A model generated the notes under the pieces. The model was not told the origin of the DNA. It worked only from the letters and a program-made list of their open reading frames with translations, and did no database searches. This document shows, piece after piece, positions 511 through 39,685 of a DNA stretch of 64,000 nt. The DNA comes from Haliotis rufescens. Lineage: Eukaryota. The first letter of the stretch is position 1; each line of letters opens with the position of its first letter. A program made the position numbers and the translations under genes. The DNA lies in assembly GCF_023055435.1 (NCBI RefSeq), contig NW_025963779.1:52576001-52640000 (forward strand). Direction: 5' to 3'.

Positions 511-1179
511 CTCATCATCACTGGCGGCATCTTCAACTTTCATCTCTTTTAAATCTTCAACAAAATGTGTCAGCATCCCAGCTTTAGAAACCTTTTCAGC
601 AAAACTAAGACTACCGTCCGTGTTGTTCCACACAATCATTCGGATCAAGGACAACTTCTGAGCATTAATAAGCTGTGTCTTGTCTTCAGCGCCCAACACC
701 ATAAGCGCCATACATTTCAACCCAAGCGACTTCAGCAGTGTGACAAATGCTGCGTTCAGCACTTCAGCAGCCTCAGTCAAAGCAAAGTAATCACCCAGCT
801 TACGTCGGTCTGTATCATTGTGGTGCTCGAAACCCAAAAATGTCCAATTGTAAAGTTTTGAATATTTTCCATTCTTCGTAAAAGCATCATCCTTAAGTTG
901 TTGTATAAAAGCCTCAATTTCATTAAACTGCAAATTTAAATGTGGAAAATTCTCCTGCAGTTTCTTCATTTCAGCCTCTGTGTCCACTCCAGGAGGTACA
1001 TTGTTTACCGTTGGCTCAAGAGCGACATCAGGTTTTCCTCTTTCAGTCGATGTGTTCCCGCCAGAAGATACAGTATTGACCGGTGGCTTCTGGGAGACAT
1101 CAGGTTTCCCTGCCCCAGTCTTTGCTGCATCCGCGGTTTGGCGAGGCGGAGGCCTCTGCATGCTGCTTGTGCTGCCCAT
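511..1179 (-). CDS. Paralog A: first coding exon of a third family member (gene continues beyond the window start)
   Basis: ATG at 1179 (MGSTSS), acceptor AG at 1188-1189, phase-0 donor GTCAGT after DDE at 510. Shares RRKLGDYFA..AA, WNNTDGSLSFAEKV..G.L.HFVEDLK with exon 1 of B (LNYTDSSLYFCEKL..G.F.YFVEDLK) and C (WNYTDASVQFSERV..G.L.YFVGDLK). Confidence 0.82.
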
Positions 1180-2699
1180 CTGACTATCTGAAACCACAAG
1201 GAATCTTTAAGGCGAATTTAACATCGTTATTTGGTTATATTTGGTGGTGAGATATCCTGATGGTTAAACATTCGTTCGTCGCACCGTAGGCAAAGGGCTC
1301 GATTACTCATATGGGAATTTTATGTGAAGCCGGTTTCTGGTGTTCCTGTCTTGATATTGCTGAAACACGGCTAAAGCGTCGTAAATTTGTCCTCCTTGAT
1401 CAATATGTTCATCACGGGATTCCTGTCTCGCGTGTCAAGGATATTGTACGAGCGCTTCAATCAATGCCTCCGGGTTTATTTCGCCAAATTTGTAACACTG
1501 ATCGTTTAATACGGCAATGTAATGCCCACTAGTACCGGTTTTCATACTTGCATAACAGTATTTAAGGTCCCCACATTTCAGCTCGGAATAATGATACAAG
1601 AACGCATGCAATGCATGCCACTAATCAATATTCAATACATATCGATTTCTTCTTGGAAACATTTCTCCTTGATTTGGCTGTTATTCTATGTTTATTACAC
1701 TGCCGACAATTACCCCGGATGTTTTATTCAATATGCTACAATCGACAAAATGTTTTTTTTCAAACGGATGTTGTACACCTCCTGTTGCTACAACATTGCA
1801 ACAAAACGATTCAGCGTGCTGTGAGCCCGACATTAAATGACAACCAAATCACAACCCCCAAAGTACAAGTTCACTGCTTACCTCATAGCCTGTGGCACAC
1901 GGCTACATATTCCATGTGATTTGAGAGAATATGTAGGTCAAAAATGGCTGCCCGCATGCTTTTCCCCCCAACACAATGCTGACAAAAGTACCGTTATGTG
2001 TCCTCCTCGCCATGACGACGAGTATACAATAAAGCTCTGACAGATCCGTTAGGGGTCAGGGACCACGTACTCGAGTAGAGGGCAGACTTAATATGCGGTT
2101 CACAATGTGTTTGTTTACATGTGTGTGTTCAGTGTGTATGGCAGTGTTATACATCAAGGACTATGCGAAATGTTCGTAGCGTACTCACAAGACTCAGATT
2201 GCATGTGAAGGGCCGATCACCGCTTTTGGGTGTCCGTCCTATGAAGGGTTAATTTCGTAAAGCCAGGCAAATGAATATGTTTTGTTTGTGTTTGTTACCA
2301 CGAAGGTGTGCATTTCATGCAATAGATTTTGGAACAATTGATCGATATTAATTTAATAATTTGAATACTAAATTAAACCCATTTGGTTCCCAACTTTAGG
2401 CGCGTTAAGTGGGTATGTGTTGGTTACAATGACTGTTTTAAATGGATGTGAATAGCAACTCTTTGGCTATAGATTTGCTATGTATCATTTACTCGACGTC
2501 CCAGCACTCATCCACACATAGCTCATCCACTGGCAACTCAACCACTTATCCACGCACAACTACCCAACATTTCCACGCCACACACTCTCACACTGGCCGA
2601 CTCATCCACTGACTACTAAAACCACTAACCCCTCATCAATCATTAACTCATCAACTGGCCCTTAAATCACTCATCCACGAATATATACGTCCGTTCATT

Positions 2700-5270
2700 C
2701 ATTCACCCACTCACCCATTCATTCGCTATCTCATCCACTGACCACTCACCTACTTATCTATCCACTCACAACTCACCCATATTTCCACTTTACTCACTCA
2801 CTTACATCGATTCAGCAACTCATCCACTGATCAATCACCTACTTATCTATCCACTCACAACTCACCCATATTTCCAACTCACTCACTCACTTACATCCAT
2901 TCAGCAACACATCCACTGATCACTCACCTACTTATCTATCCACTCACAACTCACCCATATTTCCACCTCACTCACTCACATCCATTCAGCAACTCATCCA
3001 CTGACAACACACCTACTTATCTATCCACCCACAACTCACCCATATTTCCACCTCACTCACTCACATACATACATCCAGCAACTCATCCACTGATCAATCA
3101 CCTACTTATCTATCCACTCACAACTCACCCATATTTCCAACTCACTCAATCACTCACAAACATCCATTCAGCAACTCATCCACTGACCACACACCTACTT
3201 ATCTATCCACCCACAACTCACCCATATTTCCAACTCACTCACTCACTCACTCACTTACATCCATTCAGCAACACATCCACTGATCACTCACCTACTTATC
3301 CATCCACTCACAACTCACCCATTTGTCCACCTCACTCACTCACTCACATCCATTCAGCAACTCATCAACTGACCACACACCTACTTATCTATCCACTCAC
3401 AACTCACCACTATTACATGCCTCATTCACTCACTTATTCACATCCATTTGGAAACTCATCCACTGATCAATCACCTACTTATCTATCCACTCACAACTCA
3501 CCCATATTTCCACCTCACTCACTCACTCACTCACTCACTCACTCACTCACATTCATTCAGCAACTCATCCATTGACCACTCACCTACTTGTCTATCTACT
3601 CACAACTCACCAATATTTCCACCTTACTCACCCACTCACATCCATTCAGCAACTGATCCACTGACCACTCACCTACTTATCTATCCACTCATAACTCACC
3701 CATTTTCCACCTCACTCACTTACTCACATCCATTCAGCAACTCATCCACTGACCACTCACCTACTTATCTATCCTGTCAGAACTCACCCATTGTCCACCT
3801 CACTCACTCACTCACTCACATCCATTCAGCAATTCATCCACAGATCACTCACCTACTTATCTATCCACCCACAACTCACCCATATTTCAAACTCACTCAC
3901 TCACTCACTCACTTACATCCATCCAGCAACTCATCCACTGATCAATCACCTACTTATCTATCCACTCACAACTCACCCATATTTCCAACTCACTCAATCA
4001 CTCACTAACATCCATTCAGCAACTCATCCACTGACCACACACCTACTTATCTATCCACTCACAACTCACCCATTTGTCCACCTCACTCACTCACTCACAT
4101 CCATTCAGAAACTCATCCACTGATCACTCACCTACTTATCTATCCACTCACAACTCACCCATATTTCCACCTCACTCACTCACTCACTCATTCACTCACT
4201 CACTCACATTCATTCAGCAACTCATCCACTGACCACTCACCTACTTGTCTATCTACTCACAACTCACCAATATTTCCACCTTGCTCACCCACTCACATCC
4301 ATTCAGCAACTGATCCACTGACCACTCATCTACTTATCTATCCACTCATAACTCACCCATTTTCCACCTCACTCACTCACTTACTCACATCCATTCAGCA
4401 ACTCATCCACTGACCACTCACCTACTTATCTATCCACTCACAACTCACACATTTTCCACCTCACTCAATCACTCACTAACATTCATTCAGCAATTCATCC
4501 ACTGATCACTCACCTACTTATCTATCCACCCACAACTCACCCATATTTCCAACTCACTCACTCACTCACTCACTTACATCCATCCAGCAACTCATCCACT
4601 GACCACTCACCTACTTATCTATCCACTCACAACTCACCCATATTTCCAACTCACTCATTCACTCACTCACTTACATCCATTCAGCAACACATCCACTGAT
4701 CACTCACCTACTTATCCATACACTCACAACTCACCCATATGTCCACCTCACTCACTCACTCACATCCATTCAGAAACTCATCCACTGATCACTCACCTAC
4801 TTATCGATCCACTCACAACTCACCCATATTTCCACCTCACTCACTCACTCACTCACTCACTCACATTCATTCAGCAACTCATCCACTGACCACTCACCTA
4901 CTTGTCTATCTACTCACAACTCACCCATATTTCCACCTTACTCACCCACTGATCACATCCATTCAGCAACTGATCCACTTACCACTCACCTACTTATCTA
5001 TCCACTCATAACTCACCCATTTTCCATCTCACTCACTCACTCACTCACATCCATCCAGCAACTCATCCACTGACCACTCACCTACTTATCTATCCACTCA
5101 CAACTCACCCATTTTTCCACCTCACTCACTCACTCACTCACATCCATTCAGCAATTCATCCACTGATCACTCACCTACTTATCTATCCACTCACAACTCA
5201 CCCATATTTCCACCTCACTCAATAACTCACTCACCTTCATCCATTCAGCAACTCATCCACTTGCCATTCA
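2700..5270. repeat. Tandem satellite, 70-90 bp unit with a variable (CACT)n block
   Basis: catccattcagcaactcatccactgaccactcacctacttatctatccactcacaactcacccatatttccac(ctca)n. Confidence 0.95.
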
Positions 5271-6089: not shown

Positions 6090-8290
6090 CAAATGTAGAA
6101 GAGTTGACATTGTATGCTAAATGTAGTAGAGTTGACACTGTATGCTAAATGTAGTTGAGTTGACATTTAATGCTAAATGTAGTAGAGTTGACACTGTATG
6201 CTAAATGTAGTAGAGTTGGCATTGTACGCTAAATGTAGCAGAGTTGACATTGTATGCTAAATGTAGTAGAGTTGGCCTTAGCTACGTTGAATGTGGTAGA
6301 GATGACCTTAGCTATGTTGAATGTGGTAGAGATGTCCCAGGCTATGTTGAAAGTGGTAGAGAAGACCCCAGCTATGTTGAATGTAGTATAGTTGACCCCA
6401 GCCATGTTGAATGTAGTAGAGTTGACCCAAGCTATGTTGAATGTAGTAGAGTTGACCCCAGCTATGTTGAATGTGGTAGAGATGACCCCAGCTATGTTGA
6501 ATGTAGTAGAGTTGACCCCAGCTATATTGAATGTGGTAGAGATTGCCCCAGCTGTGTTGAATGTGGTAGAGATGACCCCAGCTATGTTGAATGTGATAGA
6601 GATGACCCCAGCTATGTTGAATGTAGTAGAGTTGACCCCAGCTATGTTGAATGTAGTAGAGTTGACCCGAGCTATGGTGAATGTTGTAGAGATGACCCCA
6701 GCTATGTTGAATGTAGTAGAGTTGACCCCAGCTATGTTGAATGTAGTAGAGTTGACCCAAGCTATGTTGAATGTAGTAGAGTTGACCCCAGCTATGTTGA
6801 ATGTGGTAGAGATGACCCCAGCTATGTTGAATGTAGTAGAGTTGACCCCAGCTATGGTGAATGTGGTAGAGATGACCCAAGCTATGTTGAATGTAGTAGA
6901 GTTGACCCCAGCTATGTTGAATGTAGTAGAGTTGACCCAAGCTATGTTGAATGTAGTAGAGTTGACCCAAGCTATGTTGAATGTGGTAGAGATGACCCCA
7001 GCTATGTTGAATGTAGTAGAGTTGACCCACGCTATGTTGAATGTAGTAGATTTGACCCCAGCTATGTTGAATGTAGTAAAGTTGACCCCAGCTATATTGA
7101 ATGTGGTAGAGATTGCCCCAGCTGTGTTGAATGTGATAGGGGTGACCCCAGCTATTTTGAATGTGGTAGAGTTGACCCCAGCTATGTTGAATGTGGTAGA
7201 GATTGCCCCAGCTGTGTTGAATGTGATAGGGGTGACCCCAGCTATGTTGAATGTGGTAGAGTTGACCCAAGCTATGTTGAATGTGGTAGAGATTGCCCCA
7301 GCTGTGTTGAATGTGATAGGGGTGACCCCAGCTATGTTGAATGTAGTAGAGTTGACCCAAGCTATGTTGAATGTAGTAGAGTTGACCCCAGCTATGTTGA
7401 ATGTGGTAGAGATGACCCCAGCTATGTTGAATGTAGTAGAGTTGACCCCAGCTATGGTGAATGTGGTAGAGATGACCCAAGCTATGTTGAATGTAGTAGA
7501 GTTGACCCCAGCTATGTTGAATGTAGTAGAGTTGACCCAAGCTATGTTGAATGTAGTAGAGTTGACCCAAGCTATGTTGAATGTGGTAGAGATGACCCCA
7601 GCTATGTTGAATGTAGTAGAGTTGACCCACGCTATGTTGAATGTAGTAGATTTGACCCCAGCTATGTTGAATGTAGTAAAGTTGACCCCAGCTATATTGA
7701 ATGTGGTAGAGATTGCCCCAGCTGTGTTGAATGTGATAGGGGTGACCCCAGCTATGTTGAATGTGGTAGAGTTGACCCCAGCTATGTTGAATGTGGTAGA
7801 GATTGCCCCAGCTGTGTTGAATGTGATAGGGGTGACCCCAGCTATGTTGAATGTGGTAGAGTTGACCCAAGCTATGTTGAATGTGGTAGAGATTGCCCCA
7901 GCTGTGTTGAATGTGATAGGGGTGACCCCAGCTATGTTGAATGTGGTAGAGTTGACCCCAGCTATGTTGAATGTAGTAGAGTTGACCCCAGTTATATTGA
8001 ATGTGGTAGAGATTGCCCCAGCTGTGTTGAAAGTGATAGGGGTGACCCCAGCTATGTTGAATGTGGTAGAGTTGACCCCAGCTATATTGAATGTGATAGG
8101 GATGACCACAGCTATGTTGAATGTGGTAGAGATGACCCCAGCTATATTGAATGTGATAGGGATGACCACAGCTATGTTGAATGTGGTAGGGATGACCACA
8201 GCTATGTTGAATGTGGTAGGGATGACCACAGCTATGTTGAATGTAGTAGAGATGACCCCAGCTATGTTGAATGTAGTAGACTTTACTTAT
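6090..8290. repeat. 30-bp minisatellite preceded by 28-bp variant units
   Basis: gttgaccccagctatgttgaatgtagtaga, roughly 67 copies. Confidence 0.97.
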
Positions 8291-9283
8291 AGCTATGATG
8301 AATGTGGAAGTTTGACATTCAACTGCTAAATAGGATTATGTTGACGTTTTAGATAACCGTTAACTGATAGCATTGAGATAATGTTAAATATGTATGTGGA
8401 ATGTTCCGATCGTTAACGCTGTTGAATACGACAGTGATTGCATCTGAATTTAGCCATGCCTATTGTTACTGAGTCTATAGCGATGCGGAATGTGTTGTTG
8501 TGAACAGTGGATTGTGCCAGGACGAGTATCTGATGATGTTCATTGTGAATCCATGGAAAAGAAGCCATTCTGATTATGTCGCCAGAATCTCTGGTTATCT
8601 CGAATGTGATTCCATGGCTTTACTCTACAATTTATGTGTGCTAAAGTCATATCTGTGCTGTATTAATTAAAGGTCTTGTATCAATTACTCAGCAATACGT
8701 TTGTTTATCTGTCGTGTTATGCACGTAGAAAGGTTTATCATATAATGGGTAGGTTCCTCGGCAGGATAAAGAATTAACCATCGGGAATCTGGATAAACTA
8801 CAGAGATAATTGCTATCATTATCAAAAGAACAGTCTAATATACTGAAAATCAGTGTCTAACTGTGACGTAGCTAAGGCATTTTATAAGTTTTGGCAACTT
8901 TGGAGAAACAATTTTGCGAGGGCACGAGGCCTAGCCAAGCGGGATCAGTAGCCATATCTGTGCTTGTAGACCTCTGCGGCTTGAAACCTTCTCCACAAAT
9001 TAAAATAGTTGGATTTGGCCGAAATATGTTTGAATTGTTACCTTGTTTCGTTTTGTCGCTGTGTGTACATCTGACTTCACAGCTTAACGTTATGACTGTC
9101 AACAACGTCTGACTGTGGCCGTGACGTCTCGTAGACTAGGTTTAGAGTAGCTTCCCTTTGACAAAGGGCAGTTTATCTAGCGGACAGACCGATGGATTGC
9201 CGCGAAAGGCAATTAAAAACAATTGTTGTTTTGCGTATATGTTGCTTCGCCACTGTATAAGAAACAGATTTCAGTTGGAACTA

Positions 9284-10800: not shown

Positions 10801-10962
10801 TATATTGGCTACTGTCACTGTCCGACTGACACATCACTTACCCTGTGACGTAATAAATATTAATGGGCGCATTCCAGGAAAACTCGCAATGTTTCGGTAA
10901 TGTTTATGAGAGAGGGAAAGCGATTTTGAAGCACAGAATTAAAGAATGACATTAAATGATAA

Positions 10963-11118
10963 AGAGGTTATCACGCTTGTGTGTTTGGGGATGGTAAATA
11001 TCCTGTATTAGGAATAAACACTATGTATTTAATTAGCTCGCCAAGGCTCGCTAAATACAATGTTTATTCCTAATGCAGGATATTTACCATCCCCAAACAC
11101 ACTCGCGTGATAACCTCT
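10963..11118. mobile_element. Palindromic MITE-like element
   Basis: Roughly 58-bp imperfect inverted arms (agaggttatcacgc..gtttggggatggtaaatatcctgtattaggaataaaca); a half copy lies at 31490-31556. Confidence 0.7.
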
Positions 11119-12237: not shown

Positions 12238-12592
12238 GGTGAGGTGAGGTGAAATGGGGTTTAACGTCGCGTCCAAGATTATTGCACTTATATAGCGACG
12301 TGCATGTACGTGTGTGTGTGTGTGTGGCTGCTTGTACTAGTCCGGACTGATGCCGATTTATAGTGCTAGCTCACTGAGTTACCATGCCGCGGTTTACCAT
12401 GAATACCCCACTCAGACACAGCATACTGACTCCGAGCCGACCAGTCCTTGTTTTAGCCCCTTAATGTCGAGCGCCAGACAGGGTAACAACAAGTACCATC
12501 TTTTAACGTCTTTTGGTAAGACGCGGCCGGGGATCGAACCCCTGACCTTCCGCTCTCCGGGCGGACGCTCAACCACTAGACCACGGAGGCGG
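12238..12592 (-). mobile_element. tRNA-derived SINE family D
   Basis: Minus-strand head ccgcctccgtggtctagtggttgagcg..ggttcgatcccc; TSD agggcctgta at 12228-12237 and 12640-12649. Other copies at 13378-13628(-), 29347-29487(-), about 54175-54520(+), about 62998-63080(+). Confidence 0.85.
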
Positions 12593-12983: not shown

Positions 12984-15900
12984 CTGTGGACAATATTGAA
13001 TATGTTACACACACAGTGCATTCCAAGTACCATTTGGGTATGACATCAAATACACTGATCATTATGGCGTGAGACAAGTGAAACCCATCATCCAGGGACA
13101 GACCATCAATCTTAAACCGCTATGATAACGTGACGCTATTGTTGATGCAGTTGATTCTGAGCCAAGACATTGCTGGTCGTTCTGAACGTGCATTTTGTGC
13201 AAGTAAGCCTGACGCAACTACACNNNNNNNNNNNNNNNNNNNNNNNNNNNNNNNNNNNNNNNNNNNNNNNNNNNNNNNNNNNNNNNNNNNNNNNNNNNNN
13301 NNNNNNNNNNNNNNNNNNNNNNNNNNNNNNNNNNNNNNNNNNNNNNNNNNNNNNNNNNNNNNNNNNNNNNNNNNNNNCCGGAGTAATGCCGATTTATAGT
13401 GCTTGCACACTGAGATACCATGCCGCAGTTTCCCATGAATACCCCACTCAGACACAGTATACTGACTCCAAGCCGACCAGTCCTTGTTTTAGCACCTTAA
13501 TGCCGAGCGCCAGACAGGGTAACAACAAGTACCGTCTTTTAACGTCTTTTAATATGACGCAGCCGGCGATCGAAACCCGGACCTTCCGCTCTCCGGGCGG
13601 ACGCTCTACCACTAGACCACGGAGGCGGTTATATCATTGTGATAAATTATAGAGAAAATATACATCAACTATGACGTGCCTTAAGTCCGAGAAATCGATT
13701 AATTTCTCCAATACATCATCCTTCAAGTTAAGTTGCACAAGTGGTTGTGATGACCATGTTCTACCATATGACGTGTTCCGTTACATTGCATTAACTAGAT
13801 AGCATGACTACAGACTAACTTGTGGTATCAATTGAAATATTCACACTTTTCCTTCCTTTGAACGGTCAGGAATGCATCGTTTTAGTGTGGAATTATTACT
13901 GCATGGTTATTCACATTATAGAAACGCGTATGTATACGTGATTTTGTTGTTCTGAGTTCTCATACCTTATAAGAAAGCTTCTTAAGGAACACCAAATCTT
14001 CACCGGATAGATCCTTCAGCGAGGAATGCCTTTAATGGAGAAAGTAGATAATTGTTCACTTTGTTAAAAGCACACTCAACAACACGACACACGGGACAAA
14101 CTACTTCAGAATCGTTATCCAGTACAAACCTGTTGACCCAACAGAACGCGGAGTCACTCGTCAATTGTATCTGCCCTATTCACGTCGACATAATCACTCC
14201 GCGACATAACTCGTGAATAGGGAGTGAATAATGGCAGTCAAGTAATGTAGTTTCACAGGACAACGAAACTGGCGGCGATAACATTTATAGAGGTCTCAGA
14301 CGTTTACCAGTTCGGTGAAACCCACGAGCACGGGTATGGTGCTGACAAACCTAGAAACATAATCGGGGAGAACCGACGTTCGAACCCACAATCGTAGGTT
14401 TCTGGCGTGCCCAAGGGAAGTAACACTGCACAGCGAATTGCGGCGCCTTAGACGTCTGGGCCCCCTGATTATGTTTCTGGGTTTGTAAGCACCATACCCA
14501 TGCTCGTGGGTTTCATCAAAGTGGTAAACGTCTAAGACCCGCACTACTACGAGCTTTGCTCCACTATCAAGCTGACACGCCGTGATATAACTTAAATATA
14601 GTTCAAAGCGACGTCAAACCATACTCACTCATATATGTGGGTTTCCAATATATACTACCCATCAAAAGTTTAGACTCACCAGTGTAAATGTAGCCACTCA
14701 CTATACTCAACTGTTTCAAACCAGATAATGCCAAATATTCTAAACTTTTTACAGGTACTGTTAACACATGAACTGTTGTGGCGTAAAACCAAATCTGTAA
14801 CGGTGAAAAGATTAGAGTTTTTCGTTCATTAATTGTTAAAACTCTGTGAAATGTCGCACATTTTTAAACAAAATTCGCACCAAAACGCAGGTGTTCACAT
14901 GCACGATAATACACGTGTTTTAGCAGCAATTTGACGCGGGATACTCGTGCAATTCATCTTTATAAGGATTGCAGTTGGCTCCTCTGAGTTAGTGGAGAAA
15001 TTCTTCTTTGATGCAAGCATGGGTAGAGGGAGAAGTCTCCGTATTGAGCAACGACACCAAGCCTTGGCACTGCTACAAGATGGCAGATCACAACGGTATG
15101 TTGCCAGACGTCTTGGCGTATCCCAATAGGCAGTTTCCAACCTCTGGGTACGCTTTCAACAGACCAACTCCGTCCAGGATCGACCCAGGTCGGGTAGGTC
15201 AAGGGTAACATCAGAGCAAGATGACCGATGCGTCTTTTTGCTGTTTCTCAGTGGCAGAAACATTACAGCCACAGCAGCCAATAATGCTTTCCAACAAGCT
15301 ACAGGACGACGTGTATCTGTATCAACAATACGCCGCCGATTACGTCACTACGGACTGCGGGCACGTCGTCTAGCTGTAAGACCTCTTACACCACGCCACC
15401 GTCAGAACAGACTGGATTGGGGAAATGGACATTTACGCTGGGGTCCCCGCAGATGGGCAAGGGTACTCTTCGCGTACGAATCAAGGTTCAATGTGCATTT
15501 CAACGATGGTCGGATCCCAGTCTATGGACTTCAGGGAGAGCGGTACGCTGACGTTGCTGTTGTGGAGCATGATCGATTTGGAGGTGGATCCGTTATGGTC
15601 TGGGGAGGTATCATCGTGTCAGCTTGTTTACAACAAAATGGGGTGAATCGAATGGATTAGCGAGCATTATCGCCCGATATGAACCCCACTGAGCATGTTT
15701 GGGATCTGCTGGGACGGCGTGTTTATGCCAGAGTTCCTCCCCCTGCTAACCTTCGCCAACTTCGCAATGCATTGTTTGAGGAGTGGCAAACATTCCCCAG
15801 CGGCAGATTGAACTGTTCTTTCGTGGTATTCAACGTCGATGCAATGTCTGTGTTAGAGCCAGGGGTGGTCATACCCGTTATTAAATTTTGCAATTTCACT

Positions 15901-24400: not shown

Positions 24401-26051
24401 AGTGTCGTGCTACCTTTCAATGGAAATGAAAGTTGGTACATAAACCAGTTAACTCAGCCAATACCAGCAGACAACTTCACCCATTTTCTTCCGAAAATTC
24501 ATAGTTTTAATAGATATACTTTATCTTTTGCCTTGATGATTGGTGTTGGTGACCTTTATGAACATACGAATAACCTTCCGATATAATCCGTGATTCCAAT
24601 AGCAATAATTAAACGATAGGAGTTTACTGTTTCACTTACCAGGAAACCAATACCATCTTTGCACGTTGCCAAGAAATACATAAGTATGTTTTTTAAATCA
24701 TAGGATGGCAGTTACGCGGGCATGATTTTGTTTGAATTGGAACTTTATCGAAATATGAACCGGTTCCTAAACATTTTCCTCTTGAGCTAGGCACTCTAGT
24801 GTAACGTGTTTACTTACTACCTTCAGCGTATGCGAAACGTAGTCTGCGGGGGGTTACATACTTAATCCATACCGTATACATATCGCCCCAAAGCATTCAC
24901 GGTCAGAACAAGTTCCCAGTAATCTAATAAAGTATCGTGGTAGGAGGCGACAGAGTGATATGGCTCGGTGACTGGTTGATTTCGTGTCATCGTACCCCGA
25001 CGACATGGTATGTGGCTCGTTATATCAATCAGTGGTTTGTCTAGTCCAGACTAGATCATTTTCAGGCCGCCGCAGTATAGCTGGACTATTGCTTAGTGCG
25101 GCCTTAAACAACAAACAATAAAGAAAGCTACATATCCAAGGAACGTGGCTTCACACAATATATCCTGTGACACATTATCTTCAAAGTGTGTATTGAAGTC
25201 AAATATTTCAAAACACTGGCTACTACAAAGGAAAGTCATTACCCAAATAACTTATAGATTCCATATTTGTTTCACTAAAGATCTAGATAACATATATAAT
25301 TAATATCATTTCTGTATAGCCGATTTTATCTGCAACAGTTGAGGTTGTAGTTCGGATACAGTAATAGCCGTTCCATAACCACGCACAAAACAAACACCTA
25401 CACATCGAAGCTTGATGTAATGACATATATTAACTTTACCTATGCAGGTAGACTCGCGTATGAGCTTACCTGTGCGTGTTCTTTCATGAAAAGTCGTCAG
25501 TTGAGAAGGTTATCAACGTCCTGAGCACATGTCCACCAGACATAACCCATCCCAAGCATTTTATCAACACTCTACAATGCCATGTCTTGTTTCTCAGTTA
25601 AAGAAGTAAGGCACCATGACAACATGTACACAATCGATAGCCCGAGTTCAGAGCATGAATGCGTCCCGCTCGTCTCGCATTGTGGACTGCTCCCCCTATC
25701 TGAATACTGTTTGGATTGAATTGACGATCCACACGCACGTCGGTTTCCCGTAGGTAGTCCGTGGTGTGCAATCTGTTTCCAATCAGTTTATGTGGGCCAT
25801 TGGTAATCGATAAACGACTAGTCTGGTAATGATCGGATATTGCCGATATGGATGGATGGAGAGATTGATTTAAACCGGTTTTCGTTGTACATGGATCTGA
25901 CGTGTTTTCTTGTCGACTCAGAGATGACAATTACTGCAATTGGATTTTAACGTTAAGCCCACGCGACTATTCCGAACACACGGGTGCATTGCCATTTACC
26001 CAGATGCTCAAAGTGATTAACTTTAACTCGGTTTAGGTATATCTATGTTCA

Positions 26052-28781: not shown

Positions 28782-31700
28782 CTGTAAAGAAAAGAACGTT
28801 ATCATTTAGCTATAATCGATACATGTGAATCTTCAGAATGTCCGTGTGAAGATCCGGGTTAGAATAGGTCTTCAGCAACCCATGCTTGTCGTAAAAGGCG
28901 ACTATGTTTGTCGTAAGAGGCGACTAACGGCATCAGGTGGTCAGGCTCGCTGCCTTGGTTGATGCATGTCATCGATCCCAATTGCGTGGATCGATGCTCA
29001 TGTTGCCAATCACTGGATTGTCTGGTCCAGACTCGATTACTTACAGACCGCCGTCATATAGCTGGAATATTGCTGAGTGCGGCGTAAAACAACAAACAAA
29101 CAAACGAATGTCCGTGTTTTAATAAAGACTCAAAGGCTAACGTTACTGTGATTATGACATGATTGTTTTTACACAACTTTAATGGATAGAGTGGTAATGT
29201 CATGAGTAGGTTGACAGAGTGGCGCTGGAGCCTTGTTCATGATACCGATCTCTGGGTTGTCTGGTCCAGACTCGATTGTTTTCAGGCCACCGTCATATGG
29301 CATGAATATTGCAGGGTGTGGCGTTGGGCAACAAACACCTACTGTTTTTTGTTTTAGCCCCTTAATGCCGAGCGCCAGACAGGGTTATAACAAGTACCAT
29401 CTTTTAACGTCTTTTGGTATGACGCGGCCGGGGATCGAACCCCGGACCTTCCGCTCTCCGGGCGGACGCTCTTCCACTAGACCACGGACTCAAATATGAA
29501 GTCATCATGATGAAAAGACTATACTCAGCTAATTTACATGATCTTGATTTAACAAAAATTGGAGCAATTAGAAAGTAACACCTGAGATGCTCTTTCTAAA
29601 TACTTGATTTAACCTTAATTTGTATTAATAACACATAACAAGGCAGAATTCCAATTTGACCTTTTTAAATAGTAATCATAAAAATAACGATACTGTTGTT
29701 TTAAGAGTATAGGGTCACTAATTTAAAGATCAGTTTACCTTACAGATCATTTGTCATGAGAAAAAGAATAATATATAAGACAAGGATACCACATTTTAGA
29801 TAATACACGACGTAGGAAGAGCGTAATAACTATTAAGAATCGCATTTTTATATTATGAATTTTGTGTTTTTGTAATAGCCACTTCAATATATTCAGCTGT
29901 TTACCTTGTATGAGATCTTACGGAGAAACATCAGTTGCTTTCCGGTGAGACTTTTCAACGAGGAGTGTCTGAAAAAACAAAGAAATGACCTTTGACCAAG
30001 TAACCCAAAACAAAGCAGAAATATTCTGAAACGTGAACACCTATCTAATGCATTCACTTCAGTGATCTTGGATCTGGATAGAACCACAACACGTCCAACT
30101 TGTTGATCAGGGGTGCGTAAAACCTACTGAATGCGTGAGTTTGGTGTTACAGCACTGTTGGAATATAGTTCCACATGACGTTTACCACTTTGGTGAAACC
30201 CACTTTCAGGGGAATCCACAACAGGTTCTGGAACAACTATGGGCCGCAAATCTGCCTCGAATCAAATCGAAATTATTGCCTGACAGTGTCATATATATAA
30301 CTTAATATAAATAACAGGGATTTATCAACGGAGAGGACGACAAAGATTAAATATTATGATTTTGTAAACTTTGTATCAACCACTTACTTGTCCAAGCTCA
30401 TTTTACAAAGCCAATTGTGAACGTCTTTGTTTGACCAGTTGGCAGTACCATCCGCACCCCGTGCAGCATCAGCTGGTTGAGACTTCACAATTGCAGTTGT
30501 CTCCCCCTAATAACAAGTTGATGAAATCTGTTGTAATAAGTTATGTAAACAGAAGCTGTGTACAATGAAACCCTGATAATCCGGACGGTGCAGCTCCAGT
30601 GAACTTGTCCCGATTAAAAATATCTCGATTGCCAGAATCATCGTTTTAGAGTAATATTTTTTGTACACGCTTCTGACAGAATCGTCCGGAAAACGAGGTC
30701 TCCAGCTGCAGAGTTACCAGGTTACACTGTATCAATGTCATGACAAAGTTTACAGCGCTAATGCTAACCAGCTGCATCCACGTGTCCTTTGTCAGGGAAG
30801 GGTACACTGATGCAGTGTAAGTCTAGCTCACAACTACGACAATCACGAAAATTCTAAACCCAAACCATTTTACTGACAACACGCATGAATGTGGTATTTT
30901 CTATTATTCCTAAAGATCAAAGATAAAATTTTCAAACTTCTTTTTCCTTTAGGGAGCAGTTCAAAAGTTTAAAGCGAAAAAAAAGTTACTTCCGTGAGTT
31001 TGGGGGCATTACCATATATTTCTAAAGTAGGGCATGCAGCGTTCAAGTACGTCAAGTTGGCTCGAGTTGTCGTTCATTTTTCATTGTGAAATATGAAACT
31101 TAGACCTGCTTTGAAATATTAAACCCCAGAAAGGTTTACTTTGTCGGATGTAAATAAGACCGTTAAGGAAGCTTAAGGAAATATGATTGCAGACCAAATG
31201 TCTAATCAGTCAACGCGTCCTCCAATATGCTGTCACTCACGTCAATGCTATCGGTTGATGATCCAGCCTTGCCCCGAACACCCAATTCTTTTATCAACTC
31301 CGATGCTTTCTGGTCAAAAGGGTATTTTCCACTGAAGTCGAAGAAGAGTTTTGCCCCTTTAATCAATCCCAGCCAGCCATCGGGCTTGTAGCCTCTCTGG
31401 AGAACGAGAGGTATGATGGGTTTCCGGAGGTCAAAGGCATATTCAGCTTCTGTAATGTGAATTCGTTTGTGTCAGTTTTGATGTGATACATAGAGGTGTG
31501 TGGGGGATGGTAAATATCCTGTATTAGGAATAAACATTGTATTTAGCGAGCCTTGGAATAGACCGGAAATAACTGCCCCTCAATGATAAGATCGGTAACT
31601 GTCCCTTCAAGGATTAGACCAGAAAGGCTCATTCCATCATCACTTGATTCATAAGGGTGTTAGATCTTACACAGACATGTAACTACGACTTAGTGAGGAA

Positions 31701-34700
31701 GTTTATCATCCACCTTATTACTCGTTACAAACTGGTATGTATGGACTAAACTCGATTATTTGTAGGTAGCGAATAGGATCTAAAGCTGCTTTGAAGAGTA
31801 TTTCAGTTTTATCATTGATTGCCAGCTAGGAAAACCTGAGGAGATTCTGATCTTCGATGTTTGCCACTTCAGTGAAACTCACCAGATGTGATGCTGACAA
31901 ATCAACTTAATAAGGACGAATCTGGGATTCGAACCCACGAGCATGGGTTTCTGAGTGAGTATGGTTTTACGCCGCTTTAAGCAATACTCCAGCAATATCA
32001 CGGCGGGGGACACCAGAAATGGGCTTCACACATTGTACCAACGTCGGGAATCGAACCCGGGTCTTCGGCGTGACGAGCGAACGCTCTAACCACTAGCCTA
32101 CCCGACAGCCCCTCATGGGTTTCATAGGTGAAAGAGATGCAGTTCTGTGGTGCATTAGCCAACTGGGCTACCCGTGTCGATACTTGTTAGCATCATAGGA
32201 TAATTCAAAAACTGCTGATTGCAGCGTAACGTAAACTTCATTTGTTTAACCATTAATACTGGTCTGAATATTGTGTCGCACGGGCCAATCCCTATCAACT
32301 AGAAATAATACTGAAACTAGTTGTCGTCCTACCTGATCTGCAGTTCTGGCTCAGCTTGTATCTCTCCGACATACACACCAACACCACAGACGCATTCTGC
32401 ACGGCCTCCGCCATCGCCTGCAATGTGGAGCCCTCCATGTTGTCGATGTCCATCCAGACCTTAAAATTGTGTTTTTTCAAAAACTCCTTGACCTTAAACA
32501 CAAGTATATGATTAAGATAACCTTAGAAATTATCAATCGATGTGTTTACAAGATTCGTAAGCTTCTAATGGCATGAAAAGTTTGATTTAAGCGCGTTCTT
32601 TTGTGGGATCAATGTTTTGCACTGTAGTTTACCAGAGTATGTGTTCTGTAATATGGAACAACATATGGTGCGACGAAAGTGAGTGAGTTTGGTTTAACGC
32701 TGCTTTGAACAGTTTTTCAGTGTCAGATTGCCGTGGAAGGAAAGTGGCACTGGTCTTAGACGTATACCACGTTCTTTTAACCCATCAGTAAGGTAGAAAT
32801 ATGATTAGGGAAAATCGGGATTCGATTAATGTCAATAGGTTTTGGCTTGTCAAAGGGACACAACTCCACAGCGAATTACAGAGCCTTAGACGACTGGCTC
32901 ATCCGAGCCCCCGAAAGACACCACAATCATGTATTTAGTTAGACAGAAAAGAACCATTAGATTTATTTCATGTCGAAGTATAACAAGAAACATACCTTGA
33001 TAAGCATTTTCTGGTCCGCCCACTGATAACTGATCATAACGTGGCCTGCATCCTGCACAATTTCGCCCTTCTTGACTGCATCTTTCTTCTTAAGTTCTGC
33101 TCGAAATGAAAGGGGAATACATTCTTCATAAACATTGACGAACTCTCACGCTTCGTGACTTTAGCCTCACTTTAAACAGATTTCAGTTTCAGGGGTGACA
33201 GTTGAATGTTAGAGAAGAGCCCTTGGCATCTTCCAGAGGCAAGGGCGTTAACTGACTGTAAACGTCCAGTTTCCACCCTTGCCGATTTAGGCTGGAATTT
33301 CTGTGCTCGATCGTTGCTCGTTGATATTACGAGTTATGTCCCTTCTATATCCTTCTATTGACCAATCAGATTCCACCTCTCATATCACTTATTTTTGGCT
33401 CGAAACGAAATTGCGGTGCCCAGTTATCTGATCGATAATCAAGATCTATATTTGTAATAATGCGGGTCTTCAAATAACGTGAGGACCTTGATTAAAAACA
33501 TGAAAAGATTTGTAAAATGTCTGTTGACGCAAAGTTAACGGTACACGTGATTTGCAAATCCTGAAATGGACCGAAATCTGCACCTCAGATTACGAATCGG
33601 ATGTCGATTTCTTTACGCGAGTTTCATTGGACTATGCATAAACTCGTATGTCCAGTCAAAATATAACTCCATAACTCCAGACAAGTTACACGAAAGCGTG
33701 TGGTATCATGTGACGCACCAGTTAACAACTTGGGGGAATGAGGACCAAGGAATTTTGGTTAGGATATTTTTACGGCCACTGCTACAAAACACGCATGTTT
33801 TCTGTGAAAGGGGGAGCGTAACACTTTAATTTTATTTAATTTTTATCTGGACATCCGAAATTTTCAGTAAACAGTTTCTTTTTTTCAGTAACGGACCTGA
33901 AGGCAAATTATATTATTTCATTATTTTATATTATGCAAGTTTTTTTTTTATCGGTAGTAAATAATGTGGGGGTTTTTTTAAAAGAAACAAACACACACAA
34001 GCAAGCACGCACGCACATACAAACCTGAGAAAAAACACTATATTTTCGCAGTATTTTTCGGGACAAAACAGGGTTCAAAAACAAAATGTCCAAAAAAATA
34101 TGGCATGGTCGTTCCCTTACTCTTGTTCCCTCGCTTCTCCTCCTGAGTGATGGCCCACAGAGCGCCCCCGGAAACCTTGGACAGTTTCTTATTGTTTTGT
34201 GATTCGTTCATTTTCCTCAGTATCGCCATCAGTTCAGCGTTTTCCTTAAAACCCAAGCAGCAACAGAATAGATACAAACAAAAAAACGTTATTGTAGTTG
34301 TGCTGTCAAAACAACCGTCACGCCAAATCTCAGGTTCGATTCCCCAGATTGGTAAATATTTGGTGTCAAATCTCGTAATATTTTAGAATATTGCTAAAAC
34401 AGATTAAAATCCTTATCATATCACTGAAATATCAATTCAAATAATTATTGATTGGATAATGGAGTAGTGTTGACGCCCCTGTGAGGCATACAACACCCAT
34501 TTCACGACCAGAAATTGGCTTCACGATTTCAGGCCATGTGAGGAATCGAACCCGGGTCTTCGACGAGCAAACGCTTTAACCACTAGGTTACAATACCACA
34601 ATCATTAACCCACGTGTCATTCTTCTAAGAAAAGGTTAAAGACTACTTTTGTAGTAAAGACTATACTCTGTTGATATGCATAACTGTAGAGAAAGTGACG

Positions 34701-37700
34701 TTAATCCTTGACAAATTTCACTTTAACGACCTACCACAAATATTCGCTGATTTTCCTTATCGAAAGCAAGCTCCCAAACACACTGAACAGCCTTCTCTCG
34801 CTCGTCATCTGATCCTTCCTGCATGACAGTCATCAACACAGGGATCGCTCCCTTCTCTGTGAGGATCTTCTTATTGTCATCGTTCTTCGCCAGTCCAGTG
34901 AGTCCAACTATCAGCTCAGACGCGGAGAAACCGTTGCAACGATGACGTTGATCTCTCCATGCAGACATTATCATGTTTAACATTATGGTAAAGACGGTAC
35001 TGTCTGCGAGTAGAGCTTTATTGTCATCCTCGTCGATTATGTTCGCCAGCAGCAGGAGAAGCATCATTTTCATCTCTGTTGAAAATTCAATGACAGACAG
35101 ACAGGATGACAGAAGCAATGTACTTTTACTGATGGCTTGGTCTGGACGTCCCTTTCATACTGAATAACACAACATACTTTTGTTAAAGTCAGATTAAGTA
35201 GTTCAATATAACGCATCTAAGTGCAACATCGTTGATTTATAATAAGGTGTATGTATGTAGCAGTAATTTTACTCTGGTTGGTTTGTGAAGCGGGTACCAT
35301 GGTAAACGATTTAACATCAAAAAGTAACATCAAATGCCTTTGAGGATACGATCCTATCTGGCAAAGCGAGGAATCATCATTCTCCCAATCTGGTCCCAAT
35401 CTGGTCCCAATGTGTCGCCCAGTTGATGATATTGATGATTTGTCACTAACGGATTGGGATAGTTAGTTATTGTTTGGTTGACGCAGATCTTTGTTGTTTG
35501 AATGAACTGACTCACATTTGACAGTACAGCACATGATTTATGCCCGGAACCCCGTGGTACCTTATGGTAACATTATGTCCTGCATGTGCAGCAGTCCAGA
35601 AAATACACACGCTCAGCATAGTCTTCAGTTTGTTTGTTGTTTAACACTCACTCAAAATATTCCAGCTATAAGACGACGGTCTGTCAATAATCGAGTCTGG
35701 ACCAGGCAATCAAGGGATTAACATCATGAGCATCGATCTGCGCAATTGAGATACGGTCCATGCATCAACCATGTCACAGAGCCTGACCACCCGATACCGT
35801 TTGTCGCCTCTGACGACAAGCATATGTTCTGAAGACCAACTGTAACCCTGATCTTCACGTCAACAGGAATTAATATTATTTGTTTGGGAGGTACCATTGT
35901 TAACTATTTGTATAGCTTCGGGAATATACAGAAATATAAGTTATCTATTGCATTATTTCATTCCTGTTGATCCCACTCACCTGGGGCGTCACCTTTAAGA
36001 TAGGCCATGGCTACAGACACTGTCCCCAGTTCCCTGATGGGTTGGCGGGTGACGGGGCTGTTGGAGCAGTTGTGGAGGACGCCCCTAGCAGACCGGAACA
36101 TTGGGTCAGTTGCTGACACCTGCAAAACAAGGATGAACAACAGACTGTCAACACATACACTCAACACACTGTCAACACAGACACACAACAAACCGTCAAC
36201 ATAGATACACCACAGACTGTCAACACAGACACAACAGACCGTCAACACAGACACAACAGACCGTCAACCCAGACACAACAGACCGTCAACACATACATAC
36301 AACACACTGTCAACACAGACCCACAACAAACCGTCAACATAGATACACCACAGACTGTCAACACAGACACAACAGACCGTCAACACATACACTCAACACA
36401 CTGTCAACACAGACACTCAACACACTGTCAACACAGACAGATACACAACAGACTGTCAACACAGACACACAACACACTGTCAACACAGACAGATACACAA
36501 CAGAATGTCAACACAGACACAAAACAGACTGTCAACACAGACACACAACAGACTGTCAACATGGATACGCAACAGACTGTCTACATAATTACACAACAGC
36601 TTGTCAACATGGATACACAACAGATTGTCAACACAGACACACAACAGACTGTCAACACAGAAACAACAGACTGTCAACGGTGATACACAACAGACTGTCA
36701 ACACAGCCACACAACAGACTGTCAATACAGACACACAACAGACTGTCAACACAGACACATAACAGGCTGTCAACATGGATACGCAACAGACTGTCAACGC
36801 GGATATACAACAGACTGTCAACACGGATACACAACAGACTGTCAACATTGATACACAACAGACTGTCAACACGGATACACAACAGACTGTCAACACGGAT
36901 ACACAACAGACTGTCAACACGGATACACAACAGACTGCCAAGACAGACACAACACACTGTCAACACAGACACACAACACACTGTCAACACAGAAAACACA
37001 ACAGGCTGTCAACATGGATACGCAACAGACTGTCAACATTGATACACAACAGACTGTCAACACGGATACACAACAGACTGTCAACACGGATACTCAACAG
37101 ACTGTCAACATGGATACACAACAGATTGTCAACATTGATACACAACAGACTGTCAACACAGACACACAACAGACTGTCAACACAGAGACACAACAAACTG
37201 TCAATACAGACACACAACAGACTGTCAATAAAGACACAAAACAGACTGTCAACACAGACACACCAGACTGTCAACATGGATACACAACACACTGTCAACA
37301 CAGACACACAACAGACTGTCAACACAGATACACAACAGACTGTCAATATAGACACAAAACAGACTGTCAACACAGACACACACCAGACTGTCAACATGGA
37401 TACACAAGAGACTGTCAACACAGACACACAGCAGACTGTGAACAAAGACACACAACAGACTGCCAAGACAGACACAACACACTGTCAACACAGACACACA
37501 ACACACTGTCAGCACAGACATGGATATACAACACACTGTCAACACAGACACAACACACTGTCAACACAGACACACAACACACTGTCAGCACAGACACAAC
37601 AGACTGTCAACATGGATACACGACAGATCGTATATACAGATACAGAACAAATCGTTAACATTGACACACAATTGTCTTGCAAGTATAGTTTTTTATACTT

Positions 37701-39685
37701 CGGTGTGAAAGACTGGGTTTTCTGAAGTTGAGAAAAGTGATTTTTTCTTTGCAGTGAAAACTAACGTTGATATTCCGCTGCTGGGAACAGAGCACGCTGA
37801 CGGAAGCATCGTACAAAAGTCCCCTCCCCGTAAAGTATCTCCTCTCACCCCTGACACAAACTGTTGACTTCCTTTTTACCTTAGTTCTGCAGGGACTAGG
37901 CAAAATAATGACAGATAGTCATTTGTGGAGTTAATATCTTTTCTGGCCGTTTGTTAGTCTTTTGAAAATAGTTCGGTATAAACTGTAAAGTTATCATTTA
38001 ACTCATCAATCGAGGCTGTTCGTTTCGCAAAGATAACGTTTGTTACTTTGACCAGCGTGTATTCTTTTGCTTCCAAAAGCGGTCTCGTAGATTTCAAGAA
38101 TATCTTTCGTTGAAGATGATTTTGTATATAATCATATCCAATGTATGGTTTCATTTTATTGACCTCAAATATATTTTGTTACTTTTTTTCATATTTTTTT
38201 TAAGATTTTGCATCACGAAACTTCTTTTTAGCAATTATTACATTTTTAATGAAATAATTTAATTTTCAGGTAAAAGTATATAAAACATAGGATATTCAAT
38301 GTGTTAAGTGAAATATTATGTTTGTCTCATCGAGTGACGGGGGGGGGAGGAGATATTTTCACCAGTGGCATAGTAGCCACTCTTTTTCCTCTTTCATCTC
38401 CTTTTCCTCGCCACTCGATGAGAGAAACATGCTATTTCACTCGGCACATAGAATATCCTCTATATAATAAGTCTTACCACTGTTTTGCCAATATGTCATT
38501 GGTTGTACCATATAGAGTCTTACTTCGGATATAATACAGTTGAAGTATCATTTAACACTTGAATTAAAAGAACAGATCAATTTCCTCCTACAAAGATTAC
38601 ATACTCGAAGTGATAGACACGGACATTAGTCCACTTTGTGAAAATTTAGAGGGACTAGTTGTTTACTCCCCAAATCTAGTATGTTACATTAAGCTACTAG
38701 TCTGATATGACCTGCGGACTCGTTAGATATGACCAATGGTGTCTACCTCGGAATCTTGCATCAGGTTGCATTACAATTTGACTACCGTCTGTTTTTCGAC
38801 AGCCATACTACAATTGTGTTCAGCTTGAATACATTTTTATATTCTGTCAGTTTGGTAGATATTGACAGTGAGATTCTGTGCCAATTTGATATTAGTTTGC
38901 AATGTTAAATGCTCTGTACTTACTTTGGCAGGGCTACCAGCTTCCTTCAGAATAGCCTTCAGGTCCCCCACAAAATATCGAAGGAGGCCACTGCCGCACA
39001 CCCTCTCGCTGAACTGGACACTGGCGTCCGTGTAGTTCCACAACAACCCCCTCATCTCCCGGATAAATTGGTAGCTCCCTTCCTCCGTCAGCTGTGCTCG
39101 TGATACTTTCTCCGTCAAGAACTCAAGTTTCCTGGCTTTAAGATACGAACTATACGTCTTGTACATAACATCAGCAGCGCGCGTGTAAGACAGGTACTCT
39201 GCAAATACGCGTCTGTGGGATTCATCCTTGTTCACGTATGAAAGTCCAATTGTCTTATGTGCGAGCATTCGAATCTGTTCCCCTTTGGTATCCAACATAG
39301 GATCTTCTTCGAGAGCGTGTATGAAGGAGTTGATGTCATCGAACCCAGACTTTAACCGAGGGTATTTGGTGACTAACTGCTGAGCCAATTGCAAACAGTC
39401 TTCGTTGGTGGCAGGTATATCCGAACTCATTGTGGAGGATAGGACTGGGGTCTGATCAGATGGATTGGTAGTGTGAGGGAGACCCGGTGCCTCTGGGGTC
39501 TGTATCAGCTGAATGTCAGATGTACCTTTTACCAGCTCTGTGGTTTGGCTGGAATGGACAGCTCCATCAAGGCAGTCCGCATTGAAACTCTCGCTGTCGT
39601 TTTGCTCACGAATGTGCGGTTTTTCGACTGTCGGTGCGAAATTGCTGTCTTGTGGAATTAAAGGAAAACTCGTTCCACATCCCAT
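28686..39685 (-). CDS. Paralog C: myristoylated ARM-repeat / TIR / SAM-like protein, 10 coding exons, 704 aa
   Basis: Hand-spliced join (minus): 39685-38924, 36119-35981, 35075-34735, 34244-34121, 33096-32996, 32492-32333, 31449-31241, 30506-30388, 29968-29905, 28781-28686. All introns are GT-AG with compatible phases; 2115 nt, no internal stop. Starts MGCGTS; ARM-like LLLLLANIID..GLAKNDDNK..AVQCVWELAF; TIR HVMISYQW..VWMDIDNM..SQNCRSEAEYA..GWLG; SAM-like WSNKDVHNWL..APEFFY. Confidence 0.88.
28848..29105 (+). mobile_element. SINE-like family A (non-tRNA structured head, (AAAC)n tail), copy with TSD
   Basis: 12-bp TSD gaatgtccgtgt at 28836-28847 and 29106-29117. Other copies at about 22965-23203(-), 26140-26377, 27407-27590, 35627-35861(-), 42056-42292(-), 49081-49330, 53431-53820, 58455-58555(-), 61180-61350. 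Confidence 0.85.
29905..29968 (-). CDS. Paralog C exon 9
   Basis: HSSLKSLTGKQLMFLRKISYK|gtaaac; 64 nt, same length as B exon 9. Confidence 0.82.
30388..30506 (-). CDS. Paralog C exon 8 (SAM-like start)
   Basis: GETTAIVKSQPADAARGADGTANWSNKDVHNWLCKMSLD|gtaagt. Confidence 0.82.
31241..31449 (-). CDS. Paralog C exon 7 (TIR C-half)
   Basis: EAEYAFDLRKPIIPLVLQRGYKPDGWLGLIKGAKLFFDFSGKYPFDQK..|gtgagt. Confidence 0.9.
31952..32113 (-). mobile_element. tRNA-derived SINE family B with TSD, inside a family C remnant
   Basis: B box GGTTCGATTCC on minus strand, (ACTC)n tail, TSD catgggtttc at 31942-31951 and 32114-32123. Confidence 0.85.
32333..32492 (-). CDS. Paralog C exon 6 (TIR core)
   Basis: VKEFLKKHNFKVWMDIDNMEGSTLQAMAEAVQNASVVLVCMSERYKLSQNCRS|gtagga. 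Confidence 0.9.
32996..33096 (-). CDS. Paralog C exon 5 (TIR box 1)
   Basis: ..DAGHVMISYQWADQKMLIK|gtatgt; absent from the ORF track. Confidence 0.85.
34121..34244 (-). CDS. Paralog C exon 4 (last ARM helix)
   Basis: ENAELMAILRKM...SGGALWAI..|gtaagg. Confidence 0.82.
34735..35075 (-). CDS. Paralog C exon 3 (ARM repeats)
   Basis: EMKMMLLLLLANIIDED...VWELAFDKENQRIFV|gtaggt. Confidence 0.88.
35981..36119 (-). CDS. Paralog C exon 2 (ARM-like)
   Basis: ttttgcag|VSATDPMFRSARGVLHNCS...LKGDAP|gtgagt. Confidence 0.82.
36139..37670. repeat. About 24-bp minisatellite in intron 1 of paralog C
   Basis: acaacagactgtcaacacagacac variants. Confidence 0.95.
38924..39685 (-). CDS. Paralog C coding exon 1 (acylation motif, disordered linker, helical/ARM start)
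   Basis: MGCGTS start; donor GTAAGT at 38923; upstream acceptor at 39756-39757. Confidence 0.85.

Follow-up and report, generated by a model that had tools for sequence, protein, structure and literature searches.

A tandem array of ARM-TIR genes with candidate lipidation motifs and a conserved catalytic-position glutamate in the abalone Haliotis rufescens

Signalling by enzymatic TIR domains is known in detail from bacteria, plants and a single animal protein, SARM1, and the majority of the TIR proteins of invertebrates have yet to be tested. One class of such proteins, named ARM-TIR or ecTIR-DC ("evolutionarily conserved TIR-domain-containing"), joins a cytosolic ARM fold to a TIR domain, is widespread in invertebrates, absent from vertebrates and of unknown function. 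Here, we describe three paralogous genes of the abalone Haliotis rufescens, designated A, B and C, in a stretch of 64,000 nucleotides (positions 52,576,001 to 52,640,000 of the forward strand of contig NW_025963779.1). This stretch is referred to as the window, its contig as C1, and positions without a prefix count from the first letter of the window. Judged by their sequence, the genes belong to the catalogued invertebrate ARM-TIR class. The reading we favour, with a chance that we place somewhat below even, is that they encode catalytically competent, membrane-associated TIR proteins, because a glutamate (Glu) motif in the TIR domain is invariant across more than three phyla. The contribution of this analysis is a sharper functional hypothesis.

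Gene A: 39685-28686, minus strand, 10 exons, 2115 nt coding, 704 aa, stop TAA (RefSeq LOC124131329)
Gene B: 24400-12885, minus strand, 10 exons, 1968 nt coding, 655 aa, stop TGA (RefSeq LOC124131331, isoform X2)
Gene C, exon 1: 1179-511, minus strand, phase-0 donor at 511, 96% to the H. cracherodii orthologue P0186

The immunome of Aplysia comprises 11 ARM-TIR genes, again without a known function, and the same survey found no orthologues of MAL, TRIF or TRAM and proposed the ARM-TIR proteins as novel Toll-like receptor adaptors (PMC9334734). One Aplysia member, LOC101851026, is a direct homologue of the abalone proteins with 42% identity. The ecTIR-DC families go back to Gerdol et al. 2017, as that work is cited in PMC6321704 and PMC6836662. 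In the available portions of the ARM-TIR and ecTIR-DC accounts (PMC9334734, PMC6321704, PMC6836662), which do not include the original paper of Gerdol et al. 2017, the myristoylation motif, the SAM-like tail and the invariant Glu go unmentioned. A 2026 preprint describes uncharacterised, highly diverged eukaryotic TIR clades that are common in molluscs and cnidarians (PMC13142454), and the supplements of this TIR atlas do not list the accessions of the genes discussed here. Our literature search found no functional study of the family.

With the NAD+ hydrolase SARM1 and its counterparts C. elegans TIR-1 and Drosophila dSarm, the abalone proteins share an ARM region and a TIR domain with Glu at the catalytic position, together with helical modules of SAM type or, in abalone, SAM-like type, and complete SARM1 chains rank among the best Foldseek matches of the abalone model (E 2e-6). 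The arrangement of these parts differs. The abalone proteins read ARM-TIR-SAM-like with one C-terminal module, whereas SARM1 reads ARM-SAM-SAM-TIR, with two central SAM domains building an octamer ring. At the N-terminus the abalone family carries a myristoylation motif, in contrast to the mitochondrial targeting peptide of SARM1. Moreover, the abalone family is a multi-copy tandem set, whereas SARM1 is typically single-copy (PMC7075850). Judged by E-values, identity and fold, the TIR of SARM1 is no closer to the abalone TIR than that of Cat1, the SEFIR domain of Act1 or the TIR of RPS4. An earlier note, made from the sequence of this stretch alone, had held that the genes are not SARM1 orthologues, and the differing domain order, the single SAM-like module and the low TIR similarity (identity 15-20%, sequence E 0.09-0.25) bear this out.

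Enzymatic TIRs of the SPARTA (TIR-APAZ), Cat1, ThsB and RPS4/RPP1 systems are, like the abalone domain, of the TIR_2 type, and match it in Foldseek with E 7e-5 to 1e-3. In contrast to these bacterial and plant proteins, the abalone TIR is partnered by eukaryotic ARM and SAM-like domains and is encoded by genes with nine spliceosomal introns. A recent transfer from bacteria is ruled out by these introns, whose phases are conserved between the paralogues, and by the spread of the family over several animal phyla. A different parallel is offered by TRAM (TICAM2), a vertebrate TIR sorting adaptor that is placed on membranes and has an N-terminal MG myristoylation signal. Its N-myristoylation, reportedly established by Rowe et al. 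2006, is paralleled by the motif of the abalone family.

Relatives were collected with exon 3 of gene A as query against 1.8 billion representative proteins. Homologues were found in gastropods (Haliotis, Gigantopelta, Patella, Littorina, Babylonia, Nucella, Aplysia, Arion, Plakobranchus), bivalves (Magallana, Saccostrea, Sinanodonta), a brachiopod (Lingula), an annelid (Dimorphilus), invertebrate chordates (amphioxus and the tunicate Styela) and stony corals (Pocillopora, Porites, Stylophora, Oculina, Desmophyllum), the corals holding many paralogous clusters. All are labelled "uncharacterized" or "TIR domain-containing". Among the 120 matches listed, the named homologues are invertebrate only, vertebrates not having been searched exhaustively. 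The reading of the earlier note as a locally expanded set is overstated in so far as the family is no novelty of this locus: the same architecture, MG start and xPEFFY tail recur from corals to amphioxus and tunicates.

Motifs and domain architecture

Searches were run with single exons, and full-length analyses with the public proteins P0012 (RefSeq XP_046350499.2, 655 aa) and P0184 (LOC124131329, 704 aa), which equal models B and A, respectively. Residue numbers refer to P0012. The features of the two complete genes are the following.

Gene A, N-terminus MGCGTS: 39685-39668, minus strand, N-myristoylation consensus (Gly2, Ser6), with Cys3 as candidate palmitoylation site
Gene A, armadillo repeats, exons 2-4: 36119-34121, minus strand, Arm/ARM_PUB matches on exon 3 alone
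Gene A, TIR domain, exons 5-7: 33096-31241, minus strand, TIR_2 37.2 bits on exon 6 alone
Gene A, linker and C-terminal SAM-like helical domain, exons 8-10: 30506-28686, minus strand
Gene B, N-terminus MGSSSS: 24400-24383, minus strand, N-myristoylation consensus
Gene B, armadillo repeats, exons 2-4: 23400-20779, minus strand, residues ~212-405
Gene B, TIR domain, exons 5-7: 19915-17010, minus strand, residues 421-550
Gene B, disordered linker (556-580) and SAM-like domain (583-655), exons 8-10: 16453-12885, minus strand

The Glu motif can be followed through the whole family. Glu492, which lies within S.NCR.EAEY, is invariant in 28/28 members of the family alignment, and the motif C[RK]xE[AG]xY occurs in 105 of the 120 homologues listed and in every annotated copy of the cluster. 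HMMER aligned Glu492 both to the Glu in the "HKE" of C. elegans TIR-1, taken here as the position of SARM1 E642, and to the C..E catalytic motif of the NADase Cat1. Intron 6, of phase 1, interrupts this Glu codon in both genes, with G at 32333 and AA at 31449-31448 in gene A, and G at 18220 and AG at 17215-17214 in gene B. Two members carry the automatic UniRef name 'ADP-ribosyl cyclase/cyclic ADP-ribose hydrolase'.

The N-termini of genes A and B, as well as that of gene C (MGSTSS), fit the consensus for N-myristoylation, for which we used Met-Gly, a small uncharged residue 3 and Ser, Thr, Ala, Gly, Cys or Asn at position 6. The TIR motif is present in 98 full-length homologues; of these, 76 begin with MGxxx[STAGCN], coral, amphioxus and tunicate proteins included, and 97 have the xPEFFY tail.

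ARM repeats and a TIR fold are firmly confirmed by profile and model comparisons, in agreement with what the earlier note had read from the exons. Against the Pfam Arm model (cut-off 20.6), P0012 scores 25.7 bits and relatives up to 43.7 bits. A profile built from 28 family members finds designed ARM proteins, Vac8, ODAD2 and beta-catenin in the PDB with E 1e-23 to 1e-13, and Foldseek matches the P0012 model to designed ARM proteins with TMt 0.5-0.69. TIR_2 (PF13676, cut-off 28) reaches 37-41 bits when exon 6 is searched by itself and 77-86 bits in full-length proteins. The AlphaFold2 model of P0012, computed with the family alignment, has a mean predicted local distance difference test (pLDDT) of 82.4 and a predicted TM-score (pTM) of 0.73. 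In this model, residues 54-402 form a helical solenoid with pLDDT mostly >90, a region of ~350 residues with the canonical armadillo repeats at its end, and residues 421-550 an alpha/beta TIR domain. Residues 583-655 fold as a small helical domain (pLDDT 82-91), and residues 1-51, 406-419 and 556-580 are disordered.

Gene models and the tandem array

A six-frame translation of the 64-kb window places genes A, B and C head-to-tail, all on the minus strand. Exons were modelled by tblastx of the A and B sets against each other, after which in-frame AG/GT sites were sought around each block. Exon 10 of both genes was located where the regions downstream of the two sets resemble each other in nucleotide sequence.

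Gene A, exons 1-5: 39685-38924, 36119-35981, 35075-34735, 34244-34121, 33096-32996, minus strand
Gene A, exons 6-10: 32492-32333, 31449-31241, 30506-30388, 29968-29905, 28781-28686, minus strand
Gene B, exons 1-5: 24400-23768, 23400-23268, 21831-21488, 20890-20779, 19915-19824, minus strand
Gene B, exons 6-10: 18379-18220, 17215-17010, 16453-16329, 14029-13966, 12983-12885, minus strand

The introns of A and B are GT-AG without exception (18/18), and their phases are 0,1,0,1,0,1,0,2,0 in each gene. The exon models and their RefSeq counterparts agree with the earlier note, which had recognised three head-to-tail minus-strand paralogs, two of them complete with the same 10-exon phase structure. 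Its outer limits are right as well, 511 being the end of gene C exon 1 and 39685 the end coordinate. To its description it must be added that exon 10 of gene B sits beyond an assembly gap. Exons 2-10 of gene C lie just below the start of the window, at C1:52574877-52569040, where the gene is complete.

P0012 matches gene B exon by exon, with 100% identity over most exons; lower values of high-scoring segment pairs reflect edges that extend into introns, and exon 3, which had dropped below the identity filter of this comparison, is covered by the pair at 21488-21904. Its orthologues in H. cracherodii (P0151) and H. asinina are also 655 aa long, and P0151 ends in the same final residues as gene B. 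P0184 has the same length as gene A and exon identities of 95-100%. The genes are real and already annotated in RefSeq, where LOC124131329 and LOC124131331 are named "uncharacterized"; no new gene models are added here.

Further evidence comes from transcript-like contigs of public runs, whose RNA origin is a guess only. Of the words in a 5.6-kb stretch taken from gene A, ~15% occur in 14 public runs, which equals the exonic share of the stretch. Contigs without mismatches join 31240|30505 (exons 7-8) in three of the four runs examined (X2, X3, X6) and 34121|33096 (exons 4-5) in two (X2, X6). Both joins coincide with the predicted splice sites within 1-2 ambiguous bases, and contigs of equal depth cover exon 10. 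Since these contigs skip introns at GT-AG sites, they come from spliced molecules. Spliced molecules that join the exons, the check which the earlier note had called for, are seen at two junctions of gene A.

Within the introns of gene A, the stretches 28887-29073, 31879-32252 and 33188-33748 show a huge summed contig depth in all four runs examined, and are presumably dispersed fragments of transposable elements that are transcribed elsewhere. Intron 1 of the same gene also contains a minisatellite of 24-bp units (36137-37627, ~62 copies at 83% match), which yields long spurious Cys/Val-rich open reading frames on both strands.

To establish the extent of the array, exons 3, 7 and 10 were compared with the whole assembly and the 70 kb below the window were examined. 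The three paralogs seen by the earlier note are those of the window, but the whole array consists of six same-strand copies spanning ~98 kb (C1:52,517,509-52,615,685), so that the tandem expansion it described is confirmed at a larger size. Copies E (LOC124131332, 619 aa) and F (LOC124131334, 609 aa), within C1:52517509-52543280, are intact, with both the TIR motif and the xPEFFY tail retained. Copy D (C1:52552561-52556171, ~20-23 kb below the window start) carries a TGA in frame within ARM exon 3 and lacks a Met where the MG start would be. Its exon 7 is duplicated, its introns are very short and exons 8-10 are missing; it is probably a pseudogene. Six dispersed family-like loci have ARM and/or TIR exon matches with 46-72% identity, namely at C1:6931453-6937883, C1:31929726-31965458 (two), C1:86368297-86381881, C257:4567484 and C334:57027419-57034577. 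At 86.37 Mb, an exon 10 tail is present as well. Among array copies, exon 1 shows 35-70% identity vs at least 80% in TIR exon 6. A diversifying family of defence type fits this pattern of tandem copies whose N-terminal and ARM regions have diverged.

Proposed function and competing readings

A catalytically competent, membrane-associated TIR protein might act in four steps. N-myristoylation, probably combined with palmitoylation in gene A, would bring the protein to the cytosolic face of a membrane. By analogy, the ARM solenoid may bind a partner or ligand and thereby control the TIR domain. The latter would consume NAD+ once molecules are brought together, as hinted at by the invariant Glu at the position that is catalytic in SARM1 and in plant and bacterial enzymes. 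On slighter grounds, the SAM-like domain could add self-association or partner binding. The chain proposed in the earlier note, in which clustering via SAM would turn on TIR enzymatic signalling or cell death, is likewise an inference. A broader proposal, which we consider doubtful, is that animals have, apart from SARM1, a second and independent lineage of NAD+-consuming TIR enzymes, represented by this family. Such a lineage would be lipid-anchored to membranes, with its own ARM sensor and SAM-like oligomeriser; it would have persisted from cnidarians to invertebrate chordates, disappeared in vertebrates and the model ecdysozoans, and expanded into a defence array in abalone.

The family is easy to define by its MG start, ARM repeats, S.NCR.EAEY TIR and xPEFFY tail, and is a concrete candidate for membrane-tethered TIR NADases in animals beyond SARM1. 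For abalone, which is affected by withering syndrome, vibriosis and herpesvirus outbreaks, the six-gene array is a delimited locus in which expression and association could be studied.

Several observations weigh against an enzymatic, membrane-anchored protein with a SAM-type tail. The conserved Glu is necessary and not sufficient for NADase activity, and the comparison with the SARM1 pocket covers the position of this Glu only. Structurally, the abalone TIR is as near to the non-enzymatic Hydra TRR-2, MyD88 and IL-1RAcP as to SARM1. A literature search found no biochemical or expression-after-challenge data for any family member. Regarding the anchor, copies E and F start at an internal Met in RefSeq, with no MG in the frame of exon 1. 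Isoform X1 of gene B (664 aa), formed with an upstream exon and an AG acceptor at 24409, puts nine residues, MKEHAQHDT, ahead of MGSSSS and, going by this sequence, would not be myristoylated. Since E and F lack the MG start and X1 buries it, membrane anchoring is not universal in the family, and half of the array may not be lipid-anchored. As for the tail, none of the 28 members reached a Pfam SAM gathering score, the best being 19.7 bits for SAM_3 (22.6 required) and 17.3 bits for SAM_2 (20.5 required). When whole proteins were compared by hhalign with four abalone SAM domains, helix 1 alone was aligned (14 columns, E 0.05), and a homodimer prediction with two copies of residues 581-655 scored 0.02, which is evidence neither way.

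The main rival to an enzyme is a non-enzymatic, lipid-anchored sorting or bridging adaptor comparable to TRAM, which we regard as rather unlikely, yet a serious contender. The TIR domain would here do no more than scaffold TIR-TIR assemblies that include Toll-like receptors at membranes, the ARM and SAM-like parts would recruit downstream factors, and the family could fill the role of TRAM, TIRAP and TRIF, which molluscs lack. The N-myristoylation motif with its parallel in TRAM is consistent with such a role, as is the Aplysia survey with its missing MAL, TRIF and TRAM and its proposal of ARM-TIR proteins as receptor adaptors (PMC9334734). However, a pure scaffold would not need a Glu and an S.NCR.EAEY motif that stay invariant across cnidarians, lophotrochozoans and invertebrate chordates, and the TIR_2 score of ~80 bits lies far above the ~20 bits of the receptor-type Pfam TIR model.

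A separate question is whether the C-terminal 75 aa are related to SAM at all. They could be an unrelated small helical module, an 'xPEFFY' domain, in which case the analogy to SARM1 would reduce to ARM plus TIR; we hold this to be possible, leaning towards unlikely. The sub-threshold Pfam scores and the 14-column alignment speak for such a module. A value of 0.77 for the C-terminal part to SAM_3/SAM_2 clusters in the protein atlas falls within the range of shuffled proteins and serves as a lead only. In contrast, when the 78 C-terminal columns were compared by hhalign with ten SAM_2 domains of the same genome, the alignment was collinear over 64/72 SAM columns, with a score of 25.3 and E 1.1e-4, at a probability of only 57%. 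None of 30 column shuffles scored above 13.1 (best E 0.05), and the reversed profile reached 16.4 (E 0.0097). The other weak matches are independent and all lead to SAM families. Sub-threshold hits to SAM_3, SAM_1 or SAM_2 occur in 7/28 members (E 0.0009-0.006), the first helix of the tail (W..DV..WL) lines up with the beginning of SAM1 of C. elegans TIR-1, and the SAM domain of SMS1 is a PDB match at E 0.29. Foldseek with the 655-aa and the 300-aa model was uninformative on this domain, as ARM and TIR filled the match lists. The support is thus consistent and weak, and the tail is best described as SAM-like, not as a proven SAM domain. The order given in the earlier note, from acylation motif through disordered linker, helical/ARM region and TIR to a SAM-like end, stands. 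Its SAM-like end is a divergent match that stays below the Pfam cut-offs.

Elsewhere in the genome, a separate tandem cluster at C35:34398801-34455148 has four SAM_2 matches in 57 kb on one strand, and its SAM exons are nearly identical (KKLEKHIPLF...).

Least probable, and in our view improbable, is a housekeeping or neuronal, cell-biological regulator with no link to immunity, for example in NAD+ or nucleotide signalling at membranes, with the array as a neutral tandem duplication: the family is ancient, broadly retained and usually of modest copy number, SARM1 acts mainly in neurons, and gene A appears in transcript-like contigs from several unchallenged data sets, but the divergence of the N-terminal and ARM regions relative to TIR exon 6 together with the pseudogene resembles the birth-and-death evolution of defence genes, and corals hold many paralogous clusters.

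Assembly gap and repeats

Intron 9 of gene B contains the one run of N in the window.

Assembly gap of 154 N: 13224-13377, inside gene B intron 9
SINE-like repeat, ~140 bp: 13484-13623, minus strand, gene B intron 9
SINE-like repeat copy: 29349-29488, gene A intron 9
SINE-like repeat copy: 12448-12587, in the window

The gap lies 588 bp past the donor of exon 9 (13966) and 240 bp ahead of the acceptor of exon 10 (12983). The run of N interrupts no reading frame, and a disruption of gene B is ruled out by its intronic position. The copies of the repeat, which resembles a short interspersed nuclear element (SINE), are 93-95% identical to one another in blastn, and the element reaches a depth of 10^4-10^5 in transcript-like contigs. 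As the same element occupies intron 9 of both A and B, the order of exon 9, repeat and exon 10 appears to be kept across the gap. The gap itself probably arose because it abuts related repeat sequence.

Between genes C and B there are two large minisatellite arrays (2708-5261 and 6091-8307). One has ~89-92-bp units and is strongly C-rich on the plus strand, with a GC skew of -0.6. The other consists of ~68 copies of a 30-bp unit and gives non-gene open reading frames of 645-685 aa in several frames.

Upstream of the cluster, the 40-64 kb part of the window holds only minisatellites and repeat-derived open reading frames; neither a further family exon nor a convincing gene was seen there. Tandem-repeat arrays lie at 43081-44340, 51809-52628, 59667-61014 and 61395-61859. 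One of them is C-rich and gives a Pro/Ser-rich pseudo-reading frame of 462 aa, and another is built of ~12 copies of a 38-bp unit with 97% identity.

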